Shown here: positions 35,139 to 42,970 of the stretch, piece after piece | How positions within the stretch are numbered: position 1 is the first letter of the stretch | How the letters are laid out: every line of letters begins with the position of its first letter | Assembly (NCBI GenBank): GCA_025786725.1 | Contig: JAHLTZ010000006.1 | Span: 434,001-498,000, forward strand | Length of the DNA: 64,000 nt | Direction of reading: 5' to 3' | DNA from: Syncephalis fuscata S228 | Lineage: Eukaryota > Fungi > Zoopagomycota | Translations under genes and position numbers: made by a program | The notes under the pieces: model-generated | What the model was told of the DNA's origin: nothing | The model's database searches: none | Seen by the model: only the letters and a program-made list of their open reading frames with translations

Positions 35139-38100
35139 TTATTTATAGCTATGTTTAGCCATAGACGTTAATGATATCAGGGACACAAAACCGTAATTTG
35201 GTTGGGTTATCTGATTCCAATGGTTGTGTATTGGCTTGAATACGCCAGATAGCTTTATAGGTTGTGATATCAGGTAATTTTTTGGTGCATCGCTCTTGCC
35301 TTCACGCGCCCGCCTCCAGTAGTCCATGTTAACCATTTTATGTGCATCTTTAGCTGCTTCTTTAACCAATTCGTGCAACTGGCGTAGTTCAATAGATTTA
35401 CGTGATATGTTTAATGTTGTAATTTGTGAATGAGCAGCCATCATTGTTTCTTTTATCGCAATAAGATTGGAGTTTAGCGACGGAATGTTTTTGCTAACCG
35501 TACCATATGAATAATTGCATGAAAGTGCTGTCTCAATATTTGATCTGCATAATAACGATAAGGCATTAATGGCTCACTGCTGCAAAAATTACTGAGTGCT
35601 AATTGTTGACTAAATTCGTAAGCAATGATACCAGTACCATTCTCGGTCATTAACAACGACCAAAGTTCATTTTGTCGAATTATAGCAATCATTTGAGTAA
35701 TAATAGATGGCATTTTGTTTTTAATAGCCAAGTGTAATGGTAACTCGCAATTAGCATCATATATATTTAGTACGCTGGCATCAGGTAACAGTTTAATAAT
35801 GACTTTGGCCGTATTGGAGTCTGTTTTGCTCACAGCAATGGCTAGTGGTGTCTGAAGACAGCCAGTTGCACGCGATGACATTAGTTGACGCCATTCATCA
35901 GCGGTTACTTTGCTAGCGATGTGACGTAATGTTTCATGATGGTCATGGTATCTAGTAAAATGCATAATTGTTAGTTAAATAATACAAAGTATTAATAATA
36001 ATACTTACGCAGCAAAATGTGCAATGTTCCAGCCTTTGTAGGTAGCCAATGGATTGGCACCAAATTCAACTAAAGTATCAAAAGACTCGAGTTGATTATT
36101 AGCAATGGCCAAGTAGATAGGTCGAACTAGATTGCCCTTATCATTAAATTCAAGCAGTTGCTTGAACTTTGACGGGTCATGACTATATAGTTGTTGGTAA
36201 TGCTGAATTATAAATCGCAAAGCATCTGGCTGATTGGCCGCAACAGCAATGTGGATTGGTGTTGGCTTGTTGATTGAGTCCACCCCTATTAAACGCTTTG
36301 TGGCATCTTCCAATTCGGTATCTGTTTTTAACACTGATGTACGGCGATCTTGCGGATGTTTTTGCGCAAATCGCCGAAGAGCATGGGTAGGCCGATCACT
36401 AAGCAAATACGCCATACTACGATGATTGTTTGCTGAGATGGCGAGGTGTAATAATGGTAAATCTTTTGGATCACGATTGTCCGGATTGTGTTTGTTGATC
36501 CAGCTTAGCTTCTTCTTTCCGTCGACGTTCAGTCCGAGGTAGTTTTCTTTAATGTTTAGTTTAGTTTCAGGATCAATCTCGTCACAATCGCGATAAATGT
36601 TAACTCCAGAGAAACTATCGCCAGCGGCACATTCTCTGTAATATATATGAACATAAATAGCGATTAGTCAATTGAATTATTTTGTATTAATGGGTGCTTA
36701 CTCAATGAATAAATCGATAATTTCTTCGTGTCCAAGCAACACCGCTAATGAGTAGAGAAAAATGCCGTTATCGCCGTATTGCCGTAGGAGTTGCCGCGCT
36801 CACTGCTTATTAATGCTTGTACAGCATCTGATTGAACCTTTGTGTCCAAATCCAATCCTAAAATATTGCATTAATTAGTTGTCTAAATTAATCATACTAT
36901 TGTTAATATTTACCATTTTCAAGCTTCTTTGTCGCATTTAATAAAGCACGAACCAATTCAAGATCGCCACGAATTACCGCAATCTGTAACGGAGTTAGTG
37001 CTTTGAAAATACTTTTCAAAGGCTTTACACCATTATTTTGATTTGGATTATATTCAATCCAACCATCAGGAAGAATAGAACCCAAATAAATACTATGCTG
37101 GCCTGTAAGCAAATTCTTTGGAAGCATATGATTGACTAATGGCTTATATGGCACTTCTGGTAAGTCATGGTCCCGTATTCTTTGAAGTTCATCCTCGTCC
37201 TCATCATCATCATCATCACCTGTATCAGCATTCTCTTCTTCGCTATAGTATTCATCATCATCTTCACTATCGGAAGCTAATTTGTCAAGTTTAAAACATA
37301 CGTTAATCACAATAATCTAAATAATAATGCTAGTAACTTACACACTCTTAAAGTATAATTATTAATGGCCTTTTCTTTGCGGTCATTTTTTCTGATTTAA
37401 CTTTTGGCGTGTACTGTTTGTCGGCAATCTCAATAATTAACGATGCCATTTCAGCATGTCCACGTAAACAAGCAATCGATAGTAGTGACTGGCTATTTTG
37501 ATCATACACACCAATATGAAGTAAATGTTGTTCGGATGTGTGTTTTACAGGGGATGTAAGGCGTTTTACGGTAGCAATGTCATTATTCCATACGGCATTA
37601 AATAGGCCATAATAAGTATCTTGCTCTTCTTGGCATACAGACATTTAATAACACCTGAGGTAATATTTGGTAATGTATACGCAAATATTTGTGGAATCTC
37701 TGGTTTGCTTTCTTTGGTGTCGGTTACTCTAGAATCAGCGACTTTTTTGTCGTAAGATGTGGATGTATTTTCCGATCGATGTCGCTTGTTTTGCTGCTCT
37801 TCCTCTGACTCTGGGAATAGCTCACTATAATGTTTTGCATTGTATGAAATAAAATAATCGCGACGAATATTCAGTTTTTTTAGCTTTTTTTGCTCGTCAA
37901 CAACATATTTCTTTTGGTAGGATTCAACATAATTATTATCTTTAGCTTTAAGAGGAGCATCAACTGGCTTTCGTAGGCTATAATATGCTTTATCCCAACA
38001 GTAACGCTCATAGGTATCATGTTCACATGCGTTAAATTGATCCAGATAAACCTGTGTAGGGTCCTGTTGGTTTTCTGATGATTTTGTAGATGCTGTTGAT

Positions 38101-41100
38101 TTTGCTGATGCTTTTGACTGAAGTGTGCTAAGTTTCTGCTCTACAGCACGAATATCGGTTTCAATTTTATCAAGAATTGTTAACTGCATGCCAGAAATGT
38201 TAGGGCTATAAGGTATATTAATATCAATGTTTAAGGGTACTAAGAGTTTGTACAAATCATTTTCATATGTGTAAATGATTGGCTGGACAATTCTTTTAAC
38301 CATAAATTCAGCGACTTGTTCTGGATTTAAATGATGATGTTCGGTAGCCTGCGGAGATGAAGTAAAATTATTAGTACCAAATCCGTGGTTAAGTTGTGGT
38401 TTAGGTAAATTCAGGCTGTTTTTGGCTTCTTGTTCCATAGCAGAGTAATACTGCTTATTTACTCGTAGAAATGCTCTACAGTCGTCAATATCGATTTGTG
38501 GCTAGTAAACAGAACAGTTAGCTATTTTTGTTGTATTATTGTCATTACCAAATATGACAATTATAAATTATAAATTATAATTACCTTTGCACCATTTTTT
38601 AGTAACAATTCGACTACATCTTGATTTTCCACATTAAGAGCTTCACACAGTGGTGATTTAAATTGAGCATTCAAGGAATTGACTAAAGAAAGTGGATTCT
38701 TAGCCGCACTTATAAAAAGCTCAATAAATTGGAAACGGCCATATTTAATTGCTGCATGAAATATTGATTCGCTGTTATGATTCAGCTGATATAATCAAAC
38801 ATGAGTATTGTTTTTAGCCATATATTATTTTATAACTTACCTGTGTTGGTCTTGCACCCTTGCTAATAAGATATTTGGCAACTTCTAAACTTGTTTCCGT
38901 ATCCTTAATTGCCATGCTTAAAGTCAATGGATAGTAAATTAATCGTCGTGCTTTAAACTTGATAACTCGACATGGATCTGCGCCAGCATCGATAAGTACT
39001 TTAACAACATCCAAATTTCCATAAAATACAGCGTGTTCCATAGCTGTCAGCTATGTAATTTAAACATAATTAAATTAGCATTTACTTAATTTGGTAGCTA
39101 ATTATGCAATATTTTACCTGAAAATCCCAATCGACCACACTAATATCGATAATGTCATCATCAATTTCTTCTGGTTCCAATTTCTCCGTCTCTCCATCAG
39201 CTTCCTGGTCCCAGTTGATTCTGCCTGGATAGTCGCTGAGCTCGTGTTTCTCAATAATATCAATTGAGCTGGCTTCACTGGCGGTATCGCTAACAACATC
39301 TTCCATTGCTGCTGATTCACGCGCTTCCTTTGCTTTGCGATTCTCTTCACTGCGGGCAAGAAGTAGTCGGATAATCTCACTATCTCCTTGCTGAGCTGCC
39401 AAATGTAAAACGGTTCTGCCGTCGGCAACACGTGCACAAATACGCGCACCTTGGTCAATCAAAAATGCTGCTACATCCCGATGCCCTTCAAGAACTGCCA
39501 ATTGCAATGGTGTTCGGCCAACGTGATCACGAATGTTGACATCGACTGTCGGTGTATTTGCATTATCTTGTGGTTCTTCCGATACCATTATTACATCTTG
39601 TACATGATCTGTGCCATCCAATTCGGCGACATTAGCTTTAGCTGGTTGGATGCTGTTTAAAAGCTGTTTCACAGTGTCCAGATCACCATTGGATGCTGCG
39701 GCACAAAGATCATTGCACGGCTGCTTAATGTAAGCCTCCGCTGACCAGTCGCCATCAGTGATAGGATGAAATGATCCAATTGCCTGACGTCCAGGATCAT
39801 CTTTTATAAAGCTGATAGTGCCTTGCACATAAATATCAAGTTCGTTCTGGTGTGGTTTATCTTCTTCTGCTAATTTGGTAACATCAGGGCAATAACCGCA
39901 GCAGTCATTCATGACTTCTTCCATAGTACCGAAAAAGCAAGGATGGCGATGGAATTTAATGCTGCGGCCTTTGTTCTTGGTATACCATGGTGAATTAAGC
40001 ACTACGTCTTTAGTGTACAGCTGTTTAACAGTATTGCCAGCATGCCATCTTGGACCATATGGCAAATGGACCGTTTCATAATCGTTATTGTCAGCCTCTA
40101 GCGCTTTCAAATCACCTTGGCGATCTTTTGCAGCATAGCTGCCAGCATTTTTATGTGCTGGTCGCTTGCGCTGTTCGCGTCGCATTTCTAAAAATTTATA
40201 TCGAACTTCTGGTGTGGCCAGTTCTTCCAGAACTAATAAACGAGCAAGTCCGTATAATTTCTCAAAGCCACGTTCATAGATTGTAGGATCGATGCGTTGG
40301 CGGTCCAATCCTGGAACGTGAATCTGTAGTAAACTATGTCAGTTTCTATTCGTTATTAATATATTAAATTCAGTTATAAATACCTCAAACCCACGCTTTG
40401 CATATTTTGCTAAACGAACTTCATAAGATGGCGAACGGCGTGTCATATCCACGCTATTCTGCTGACGAATAAACGCCTCTCGAGCGCGTGGTAAAGCCCA
40501 CACCTTTTTACCATCAAATCCAACAGAACAGCAATCAACGTCAAATCCCATTAAAACTTCGGCTGGGCTACGGTAAAGACGAAGGATGATCTGAATGTGT
40601 CGATATGGATATTGCGACACTAGAGTAACGACATTTTTACTACGAATGCACGTCACCTCCCATGGAATGCTAAAAGACATTGTTATTACTGGTCTGTTTG
40701 AATACAGTAAATATTGTATAGCCTACCTATCGCGCACTGATGTATAGATTTCGTCCATTTTAATTTTCGCTTGTTCTTCATCTAAGCCATAGATAAACAG
40801 ATCAATATCTGAACCACCATATGCTGTACTGTGGTAATATTGACGTATTTGGCTATAAGTTGCCGAGTGTTCTTTTGGTATTGGCAGCAGACATGCATTG
40901 ACCGCACCACCTAGTACCAATTGATTAGAAAAATGGATACTGCAGTCTTTAATTGATAATTACCTGCAACAAATACGTTATTCCAGTTAAGATTTTCCAG
41001 ACTGTTTTCGGTAAATAGACGCCAGTTACGACGAAACTGGTCCATTTTTTCAGAACAAATGGCCAGTTCGCCTGGCTTACGGCGCTCGTTTTCTTTCAGT

Positions 41101-41366
41101 GGCATCACGACACCATATCCAGTCTTTTCGAGCTCGTCCTTTGGAACTGTTTCTTGATGGTACCATAGCTCTGGATGCTGAAAAACATCAAGCAGCGATA
41201 CATACGGATTGCGCAGGCGATGGCCATCCGGCTGTTGGGCAAACTGTTGGCGAAATCCGGCCTCAGAGATCAGTGCGTTTTTTAATGCCTCAGCTGGATT
41301 GTTGGCATTTTGCTCTAAAAAAGCACGAATAGTTGCATCGGGATAGCTTAAGCTAGCTTCTGGCAT
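35139..41366 (-). CDS. Large protein with N-terminal nucleotidyltransferase-like domain and many ankyrin repeats, multi-exon
   Basis: VFVAG|GAVNACL...SDIDLFIYG...HIQIILRLYRSPAEVLMGFDVDCC...YEVRLAKYAKRGF, then ankyrin repeats (GRTPLQLAVLEGH, GRTVLHLAAQQGD, TPLQIAVIRGD, TPIHIAVAANQ, TPLAIAV, LPLHLAIKN). Confidence 0.88.
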
Positions 41367-42970
41367 GATTGAATACAGTAAATGATTGAGTAGTTGTTTA
41401 GCCTAGTGTTTCTGAACGTTTAATAAAGCAAGGATGAATATTGAAGCTAGTTCTTGGGAAATTGTTGAATTTCAGACCTGAAAGCGGTGCTTTTAGAACA
41501 ATTAAAAGACCGTCTTTGTGATATTCAAGCAAGAATTAAGCCAAATAGTGAGAAAAGAGTCAAAGCGAGTTGATGTGTGCTAATAATTAGTTGTATCTGT
41601 CTAGTCGTTTTATATAAAGTACGTGTTTTTTTTCAATTGTCAACAATAAACATAATACGAGCGCAAAGTGAACAACTCTGACTTGCGTGGTCATGCCGCA
41701 ATATGTTGCGTCATTGAATAGAGCTCTTGATTAGACATGAGTCATATTTCCTAATCTGGATTTAATTTTATTATATCCATTTTTGGTAATTCCATAATTT
41801 AGTCTTCTTACTTTTGTATATACATAATTAAGATTCAATATGATTAACAAGAATAAGACATATGGTATATCCATTACTGTTTCCTAACTAAACTATCAAT
41901 TATGATTTATGAATATTAATGCATAAATGATGTATATAAATATTTGCTTCTAAATTTAAGCAGTTTTATATTTTAATTTATTAATAAAACATGAAACAGT
42001 ACCCATAAACTAGTGTTTATTCTTCGGACTAAATTACGGTGTTAATTATATTTTTAATAATACTTTTGCATACATGTAAATAGCTATATAAATAAATAAA
42101 ACAGATGCACAATAGCAGCAAAGATAGTCATCATATCAATGAATCGACATAAGTATCGTACGCATACCAATATGATTGAACATGACATAATAACCAGCAA
42201 CCAATTTGACATTATCAATGTGCATAGTAGCTATTATATTAAACTTTAGCATCATATGTATATTTTTTAATAAAATTAATTACATGGCATTAATTAGTAA
42301 ATTGTTTAGTTCTGCAGTTATGTATATCAAAGCAACTAAAATCTATTATATATATTACGATCGTAAATTTGTTTCTAGACATTTTAGAGTTTTAGAAAAC
42401 GGTAATTACATATTAGCTGTAGCACTAATTGCAATAAAAATGCCTCTAGTACTTAATATGGCAATGATAATAACGATCAAGCAATAGGAATAATGTCGAA
42501 GTTGTAATGGTTTTATTGGAAAACGAATAGCTATTAAAGATGAATTAATCATCACCTCTCATCTTCAGGCAATAAATTATTCAGATTAATATGTTGAAGT
42601 TGCAAAACTACCTTACATATCATTAATGCAAAACATGCACATATTACTGAATTAATACAGGTTGTACTGTTTCTTGCTTTATTGTAAATATATGTGCTGC
42701 CATTTTATATAAGCAAATACTGCCTATTATTTCGTAACTATTACAGTATTGAAAATAATGAAATAAAACATAAAAATAGCTATAAAATCTATATAGTGTA
42801 CTGCTACAAATTGATTTCAGCATGTTTAAACCAAATATGCAATTGTATAGATTAATGGCTAGATGGCTTATTTTGTAGATTGCCAGCTATTAATCTGTAC
42901 TATTATATAAAAAATGTCCAATTAAGAAACAGTTATCATGTGCTGGTGAACCATCAACATAGCAATTATT

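Follow-up and report, generated by a model that had tools for sequence, protein, structure and literature searches.

A minus-strand gene at positions 41366-35139 of the window (the whole 64,000-nt stretch analysed here, from contig JAHLTZ010000006.1 of Syncephalis fuscata S228) fuses a nucleotidyltransferase (NTase) domain to five blocks of ankyrin repeats. S. fuscata is a mycoparasite of the Zoopagomycota. The gene is real and transcribed, and it encodes a protein of ~1,870 residues. We favour the reading, which we hold to be probable, that this protein is the S. fuscata orthologue of a Gad2-family NTase (~490 aa) followed by five ankyrin blocks, and that it transfers nucleotides to RNA 3' ends without a template. 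RNA tailing is proposed as the mechanism because of the fold class and the intact catalytic motif; the enzyme domain is probably active. A sequence-only reading of this stretch had listed NTase-like motifs and ankyrin repeats split by acidic linkers, and all of these were found on the minus strand where it had placed them; the N-terminal part, which it put at ~600 aa, is actually a non-ankyrin region of ~490 aa. Our searches were run on single exons or on the public NCBI model P0002 (1,722 aa), which is 100% identical over exon 3 and is named 'ankyrin repeat-containing domain protein [Syncephalis fuscata]'.

Precomputed Pfam lists assign PF26128.2 (Gad2) together with Ank families to P0002, to a second copy of the gene in the same contig and to ~120 homologues. 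We built an AlphaFold2 model of the enzyme domain from an alignment of 48 N-terminal regions (A1), with a mean predicted local distance difference test (pLDDT) score of 84 and a predicted template modelling (pTM) score of 0.87. In this model, helices 11-44 and 107-119 of exon 1 have pLDDT ~90, and A134-G135-G136 and D169-I-D171 lie on strands 131-134 and 170-175. A Foldseek search against the PDB returned class II CCA- and A-adding enzymes first, then TENT5/FAM46 and E. coli poly(A) polymerase I (PAP I), while CD-NTases, cGAS and NF90 appeared much lower in the list. An exhaustive fold search without Foldseek gave the same order: nine class II/TENT5 chains lead, after which Z falls to 3.8. The tops of three independent fold searches contain NTases only. 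The model shows the head-domain fold of a class II CCA-adding enzyme or PAP I, and not the Mab21/CD-NTase-type fold of cGAS, OAS and CD-NTases, so that the Pol-beta NTase fold suspected from the motifs is borne out by the model and the fold searches. At the sequence level, the profile phrog_1614 ('nucleotidyltransferase') matches from the DxD strand through exon 3, with an E-value of 1e-6 in the Geosiphon orthologue and 1.6e-4 in P0002; as a control, the same profile picked up housekeeping CCA/PAP genes in nine bacteria. The core is best explained as a Pol-beta head domain of class II, the type of CCA-adding enzymes and poly(A) polymerase I.

The reference head domains are those of the class II CCA/PAP enzymes (PF01743; 3WFO, A. 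aeolicus A-adding enzyme; 3H3A, T. maritima CCA enzyme; 3AQM, E. coli PAP I). Unlike these, the fungal domain has neither a PF01743 match nor the body and tail, carries a 20-residue helix inserted in motif A, and belongs to a family whose N- and C-terminal subdomains are its own and which has a His/Cys cluster; where the class II enzymes are expected to have RRD, it would have GFDVD. The TENT5/FAM46 poly(A) polymerases (6JYJ, 7CQZ, 6W36) show a sequence identity of only ~10%, are metazoan and have no ankyrin repeats. By this comparison, the protein is expected to work most like class II CCA/PAP and TENT5 enzymes; it is a PF26128 member by annotation, and not a PF01743, CD-NTase or NLR-like protein. 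We also considered the gene as the housekeeping CCA-adding enzyme of the fungus and rejected this, because PF01743 finds a separate canonical CCA1 locus elsewhere in the genome (G000:C339:755789-758896, L014), which has several short introns and the motifs AGGWVRDK, DLDIAI, RRDVTINTLFYN and DDPLRVLRCIRFASRF.

The catalytic motifs are encoded by the first three exons. Exon 1 (41366-40964) covers aa 1-134, which form a helical extension at the N-terminus of the enzyme domain, together with the first base of the G135 codon; M1, R39, F111, W128 and N130 are invariant in the 48-sequence alignment. The motif VFVAGGAVNA crosses the exon 1/2 junction (G135-G136), and exon 2 (40910-40727) encodes motif A, consisting of strand VFVA, G135-G136, a helix, an inserted helix (153-164) and strand S168-D169-I-D171-L-F, the last containing SDIDLF (aa 168-173). 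Exon 3 (40669-40384) encodes the rest of the NTase sheet, with QIILRLY, GFD239VD241, D270..R273-R274-S275 and Y278-E-x-R-L-x-K-Y-x-x-R288-G-F, and includes FDVDC (aa 238-242) and RLAKYAKRGF (aa 281-290). An exhaustive search of 1.84 billion proteins with the exon 3 peptide (95 aa) found 3,551 representative proteins at E<=1e-3. In all 48 N-terminal regions, A134, G135, D169, D171, F173, R205, Q222, R226, Y228, E233, F238, D239, G249, R257, D270, R273, R274, S275, Y278, E279, R281, L282, K284, Y285 and R288 are invariant. The motif pattern is therefore far beyond chance, given the exon 3 matches and these invariant residues. The GG and DxD residues of motif A are also kept in giant-virus members, and the expected conservation of the DxD aspartates was thus confirmed; D239, R273, R274 and the E279..R288 motif are likewise retained in two giant-virus proteins. 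Pfam searches of single exons 1-3 gave no match, the exon 3 sequence search of the PDB gave noise, and an NCBIfam search found nothing but MntA at an E-value of 0.09.

Several results weigh against this reading. In motif A, GG and DxD are separated by 33 residues, where the usual spacer is 9-13 residues; the extra length is due to the family-specific inserted helix. D239 and D241 are conserved, yet in the model they lie in a loop after helix 231-236, and no test placed a third carboxylate. An hhalign comparison of the family profile with two exon pieces of the fungus's CCA1 gave a probability below 1% and did not place motifs B and D. There was no PF01743 (PolyA_pol) match on P0002 and four homologues at E<=0.01, and the 48-sequence family profile found no PDB chain by sequence; since these searches were empty, the link to CCA/PAP enzymes is carried by the fold and one PHROG profile. 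Structural alignments cover only about residues 56-360, so that the tRNA-binding body and tail of CCA enzymes are unmatched, and the family has subdomains of its own. The window copy as assembled has four frame breaks. Finally, no activity or substrate is known for any family member, and the mechanism of Gad2 itself was described as still not elucidated in February 2026 (PMC12904381).

The unusual 33-residue spacer and a canonical third carboxylate that was not located on the sheet would also fit a catalytically dead scaffold that retains the NTase fold solely for binding, like NF45/NF90 or MiD51. We consider this highly improbable. G135, both DxD aspartates and a dense Arg/Lys/Asp set are invariant from fungi to giant viruses, which is unexpected in a pseudoenzyme, and the two carboxylates of motif A are reported to suffice for class II CCA enzymes (bioRxiv 10.1101/2023.12.02.569716). 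FDVD is probably the counterpart of motif B, because the phrog_1614 match runs through FDVD at the expected distance from DxD; a preprint on pandoraviruses reports 'DFD' instead of RRD for related proteins (bioRxiv 10.1101/2023.12.02.569716). By eye, GFD239VD resembles 'RRDxT', and Y-E279-x-R..KY..RGF resembles 'EDxxR..RF..F', of the fungus's CCA1, a likeness that hhalign did not support.

In the favoured mechanism, the NTase would consist of an N-terminal helical extension, a class II head with the inserted motif A helix, and a C-terminal subdomain with the His/Cys cluster. In a template-independent reaction, it would move a nucleotide from a nucleoside triphosphate to a hydroxyl acceptor, most probably an RNA 3' end (tRNA-like or other), because every clear structural relative uses one. 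The ankyrin arrays would serve as docking platforms for proteins, positioning or regulating the enzyme or recruiting partners or substrates, rather than as a hypervariable ligand sensor.

RNA tailing was one of three activities proposed from sequence, and the other two fared less well. As a nucleotidylyltransferase acting on a protein or small molecule (AMPylation-like, as with MntA, GlnE and the aminoglycoside/lincosamide NTases), the enzyme would receive its protein substrate through the ankyrin repeats. This is unlikely in our view: matches to such enzymes are far weaker than to RNA 3'-end NTases, and the phrog_1614 match is of the CCA/PAP type. Synthesis of a second messenger, in which the ankyrin part would sense a ligand or protein and the NTase would produce an oligonucleotide signal, cyclic or linear, as cGAS, OAS and CD-NTases do, would draw on the same superfamily chemistry (GG and DxD), and CD-NTases, cGAS and the NF90 DZF domain are present, low, in the Foldseek list. 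Conflict-prone giant-virus and phage genomes also hold many relatives with varied partners (BTB, VWFA, RING, ART). We nevertheless judge such a ligand-gated synthase to be very unlikely.

The head domain described above continues into the C-terminal subdomain of the Gad2-like domain (aa 292-490), encoded by the first half of exon 4 (40323-39727). The invariant residues of this subdomain include G316/L317/L320, Y373, D397, N401 and a PGRQxIGSFxP..W484 motif. A His/Cys cluster within it (39951-39886; HRHPCF..CCGYCP, aa 416-437) reads H416-R-H418-P-C420..D431-C432-C433-G-x-C436-P437. In 28 full-length sequences, two giant-virus proteins included, D241, D397, N401, H418, D431 and C432 are additionally invariant, and H416, C433 and C436 are at least 90% conserved; the cluster is a candidate metal (zinc) site. 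No usable match came from an ESM Atlas feature search with the 200 residues at the start of exon 4. As a separate observation, the stretch Y-x-K-D397-x-x-L-N401-S (P0002 residues 393-407, window ~40020-39976) may be a second ribose/phosphate contact; in the hhalign comparison, this stretch alone was aligned with motif B (RRDxTxN) of the fungus's CCA1, with a probability that was negligible.

Exon 4 (40323-39118) is a single open frame of 402 codons in which the final 200 enzyme-domain residues, the His/Cys cluster and ankyrin block 1 are all encoded, and the fusion of enzyme and ankyrin parts is not a gene-model artefact because both share this uninterrupted exon. Ankyrin profiles match P0002 strongly (Ank_2 at E 2e-53, Ank at E 2e-36) and also match exon by exon, with five ankyrin blocks separated by acidic or variable linkers. 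Block 1 (39708-39337, ~aa 497-620; Pfam Ank_2, Ank and Ank_4) is followed at the end of exon 4 by an acidic linker rich in Ser, Glu and Asp in translation (39336-39118). Block 2 lies in exons 5 and 6 (39050-38841 and 38785-38585), identified by Pfam matches. Exon 7 (38501-37342) encodes a long, poorly conserved linker and the start of block 3, exon 8 (37276-36914) an Asp/Glu-rich linker followed by one ankyrin repeat, and exon 9 (36857-36702) an ankyrin repeat. Block 4 is in exon 10 (36635-36009; Pfam), and exon 11 (35951-35139) encodes the last block and a conserved C-terminal tail.

The sequence-only reading had likened the architecture to that of sensor-effector proteins in fungal non-self recognition. 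Fungal NLR-like/STAND receptors with ankyrin, WD40 or TPR arrays likewise have an N-terminal enzymatic or effector-like domain and C-terminal repeats. Unlike these, the protein has no NACHT or NB-ARC domain in the Pfam search of P0002, its ankyrin repeats contain no near-identical tandem units, and it is highly conserved across phyla and vertically inherited. With only two copies in the genome, ~50% identity across phyla and a species-like tree, the results spoke against the sensor proposal.

The transcript was defined from public data. Contigs from four public runs were compared with 35450-41400, and one run, X1, behaves like a transcriptome (ten segments skipped). Six 5' exons had first been read from the sequence; X1 contigs confirmed these and gave the remaining exons. 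The gene has 11 exons and 10 introns, with the ATG at 41366 and the stop at 35141-35139. The introns are 53-83 nt long, all GT..AG, and every joint is spanned by spliced X1 contigs: introns 1-5 lie at 40963-40911, 40726-40670, 40383-40324, 39117-39051 and 38840-38786, and introns 6-10 at 38584-38502, 37341-37277, 36913-36858, 36701-36636 and 36008-35952. The ATG corresponds to the conserved M1 of all homologues in the 48-sequence alignment. Together, the spliced contigs and the shared exon 4 show that the NTase and ankyrin parts belong to one transcript, as had been assumed.

Relative to the X1 contigs, the window lacks one base after each of four positions: 37645 and 37385 (exon 7), 36750 (exon 9) and 35548 (exon 11). 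The same four bases are missing relative to the paralogue. With the base after 36750 restored, the exon 9 frame continues as ...SLAVLLGHEEIIDLFIE, and with that after 35548 restored, the exon 11 frame reaches the stop at 35141-35139. The end coordinate of 35139 had therefore been placed correctly, and the frame leading to it is continuous only when the four transcript-supported bases are counted. The exon lengths plus these bases sum to 5,613 nt, or 1,870 codons and a stop (a sum of lengths, not an assembled spliced sequence), similar to the length of 1,860 aa in the sister species. At its C-terminus, the S. plumigaleata orthologue aligns with the tail frame 35573-35142 (E 2e-8). P0002 bypasses the frame breaks by invented splices and ends early at 35477; this model is wrong because the assembly drops the four bases.

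The missing bases could instead be real, in which case the window copy would be a young pseudogene, only the paralogue would be functional, and the intact-frame transcripts would come from the paralogue. At three of the four gap sites both copies are otherwise identical and the RNA is not assignable to one copy, and the low-depth DNA contigs do not span the gap sites. At 35548, however, the extra base is carried by a copy-specific X1 contig that is ~99% identical to the window here, where the paralogue is only ~60% identical. Another X1 contig specific to the window copy (record 3; 816 nt, 2 differences), within the exon 7 stretch, shows that this copy is transcribed and spliced. The paralogue has its own single-base gaps, about ten relative to the window, of which five are exonic (41225, 39302, 38765, 38633 and 36137); a further one, among others, aligns to window 37237. 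The RNA contigs omit no base anywhere along the compared stretch. Over 4,862 aligned nt, the window and the paralogue differ by 16 indels of one to three bases and by 21 substitutions, and deletion-only differences nearly as numerous as substitutions are a signature of consensus errors in a duplicated region. In addition, adding the four bases makes the length an exact multiple of three and brings the stop beside the conserved tail. We give the pseudogene explanation a small chance of being right; the breaks in both copies are probably deletion-type assembly consensus errors, where polishing fails in duplicated sequence.

The paralogue is an inverted second copy of the whole gene, ~138 kb away in the same contig (G000:C328:335004-340877, plus strand; loci L001/L003-L005). 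Its NCBI model, P0151 (1,729 aa), uses false introns and an early stop around gaps, as P0002 does. The duplicated stretch corresponds to 41765-35047 of the window, and includes the upstream 400 nt (5' untranslated region and promoter, 41765-41367), which is 98-99% identical in the paralogue. Identity between the copies is a mosaic: 99-100% over 41762-38514 and 37514-36017, 42-65% at the DNA level over 38513-37764 (the exon 7 linker), and ~60% over 35766-35047. From this pattern, it looks like an older duplication that was partly homogenised by gene conversion. A second copy produced by the assembly was considered and rejected, because the copies diverge in the middle and at the 3' end and both versions occur in separate DNA contigs.

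Full-length NTase-ankyrin orthologues of ~1,750-1,900 aa, whose first 480 residues are 47-57% identical, are present in Glomeromycota, chytrids, Allomyces, Basidiomycota and Ascomycota (six fungal phyla in all), and in Planoprotostelium and Blastocystis. Giant-virus metagenome contigs encode intronless proteins of 1,509-1,553 aa with the same layout and ~40% identity, and many more divergent members that keep the same motifs. In IMG/VR, dozens of giant-virus contigs (up to 1.26 Mb) carry the domain (L006-L013, L015-L044), some more than once per contig (e.g. UViG_3300042922_000939 and UViG_3300024981_000255). BFVD lists Fadolivirus, Bodo saltans virus, pithoviruses and pandoraviruses, with BTB, VWFA, RING or ankyrin partners; the best match has an E-value of 6e-38 and a template modelling (TM) score of 0.78. 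An ESM Atlas feature search returned PF26128 clusters at 0.94. By shape, the Atlas gave a stand-alone 432-aa Ascomycota PF26128 cluster (TM 0.76/0.86, aligned to residues 10-427), a haptophyte BTB_2+Gad2 cluster at 0.70, and a phage Gad2+ART cluster and several PolyA_pol clusters at ~0.38. A tblastn search of exon 3 and of the 231-aa core against 50,697 phage records gave noise only. Of the groups in which a search for homologues had been suggested, fungi, amoebae (amoebozoan) and giant viruses were thus found to have them, and the phage records gave nothing above noise by tblastn.

A quick maximum-likelihood tree of 35 N-terminal domains reproduced the fungal phylogeny, with chytrids and Allomyces, then Zoopagomycota, then Glomeromycota, then Dikarya. 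The viral NTase-ankyrin sequences group with the amoebozoan Planoprotostelium, on long branches. These findings indicate an ancient, vertically inherited eukaryotic protein, of which the S. fuscata gene is one ordinary orthologue.

The founder of the family is Gad2 (Gabija anti-defence 2) from Bacillus phage SPbetaL7, a 400-aa predicted NTase that is needed to escape Gabija (Yirmiya et al., bioRxiv 10.1101/2023.05.01.538930). The fungal protein and nearly all its homologues have the precomputed label PF26128.2, and phage Gad2 and the fungal protein are both predicted nucleotidyltransferases. The phage protein stands alone and blocks bacterial Gabija, whereas the fungal protein is a ~1,870-aa ankyrin fusion; the sole phage PF26128 cluster in the Atlas list reaches only TM 0.38, and phage records show no BLAST-level likeness. 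We know of no Gabija system in fungi, and inhibition of Gabija, a functional property of the phage protein, probably has no bearing on a fungal one. Among giant-virus NTase fusions, the Fadolivirus 1,496-aa ankyrin protein and the pandoravirus 'cluster 7' BTB-NTase proteins share GG, SDIDLF, QIILRLY, GFDVD and S-x-Y-E-x-RL-x-KY-xx-RGF with the fungal domain. The viral genes are intronless, multiplied within genomes and joined to swapped partners (BTB, VWFA, RING), whereas the fungal gene is conserved as an orthologue in one or two copies. For the pandoravirus BTB-NTase proteins, a class II NTase identity has been published (bioRxiv 10.1101/2023.12.02.569716).

A broader reading would make the protein an ancient and as yet unrecognised eukaryotic RNA- or nucleotide-modifying enzyme within a virus-host conflict toolkit that phages and giant viruses have in common with their hosts. 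In the fungus, the protein would then place a tag on a nucleic acid or a nuclease-type target, in the way that Gabija is neutralised by phage Gad2, and the gene would have been taken up and amplified by giant viruses to manipulate the same host pathway. We regard this extension as doubtful, with little probability.

We found no paper on the eukaryotic branch of PF26128 or on Gad2-like proteins of eukaryotes. The PF26128 placement is already in public annotation, and the pandoravirus relatives are already described as class II NTases. An enzyme domain that is ~50% identical from chytrids to mushrooms almost certainly has an important function, and the family extends to an amoebozoan, haptophyte BTB fusions, dozens of giant viruses and, more distantly, phages. 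Interest lies with the family more than with this locus, which holds a conserved orthologue and not a diversifying receptor. Fungi offer tractable genetics, and work in them may reveal the role of this class II-like NTase, suggest how Gad2 disarms Gabija, and show why giant viruses multiply the domain.

Some other fungi also carry variants of the gene. Two copies on one contig occur in the Agaricomycetes Wolfiporia, Mycena maculata, Crepidotus, Coprinopsis marcescibilis and Crassisporium (P0169/P0254, P0193/P0222, P0171/P0033, P0194/P0032 and P0207/P0250). The three pairs in the tree (Wolfiporia, Mycena maculata and Crepidotus) each group by species, which points either to repeated duplication or to an old gene pair that has evolved in concert. 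In Gymnopilus dilepis, P0001 begins with WD40 repeats and has two NTase cores (two matched stretches, with a score above the self match), and P0154 and P0162 (~1,000-1,080 aa) have PF26128 only and no ankyrin repeats. The precomputed Pfam list of Mycena kentingensis P0235 (2,272 aa) includes an extra HD domain (PF01966), of a kind that occurs together with the PolyA_pol head in CCA enzymes of bacteria and phages; P0235 may be a gene-model fusion.

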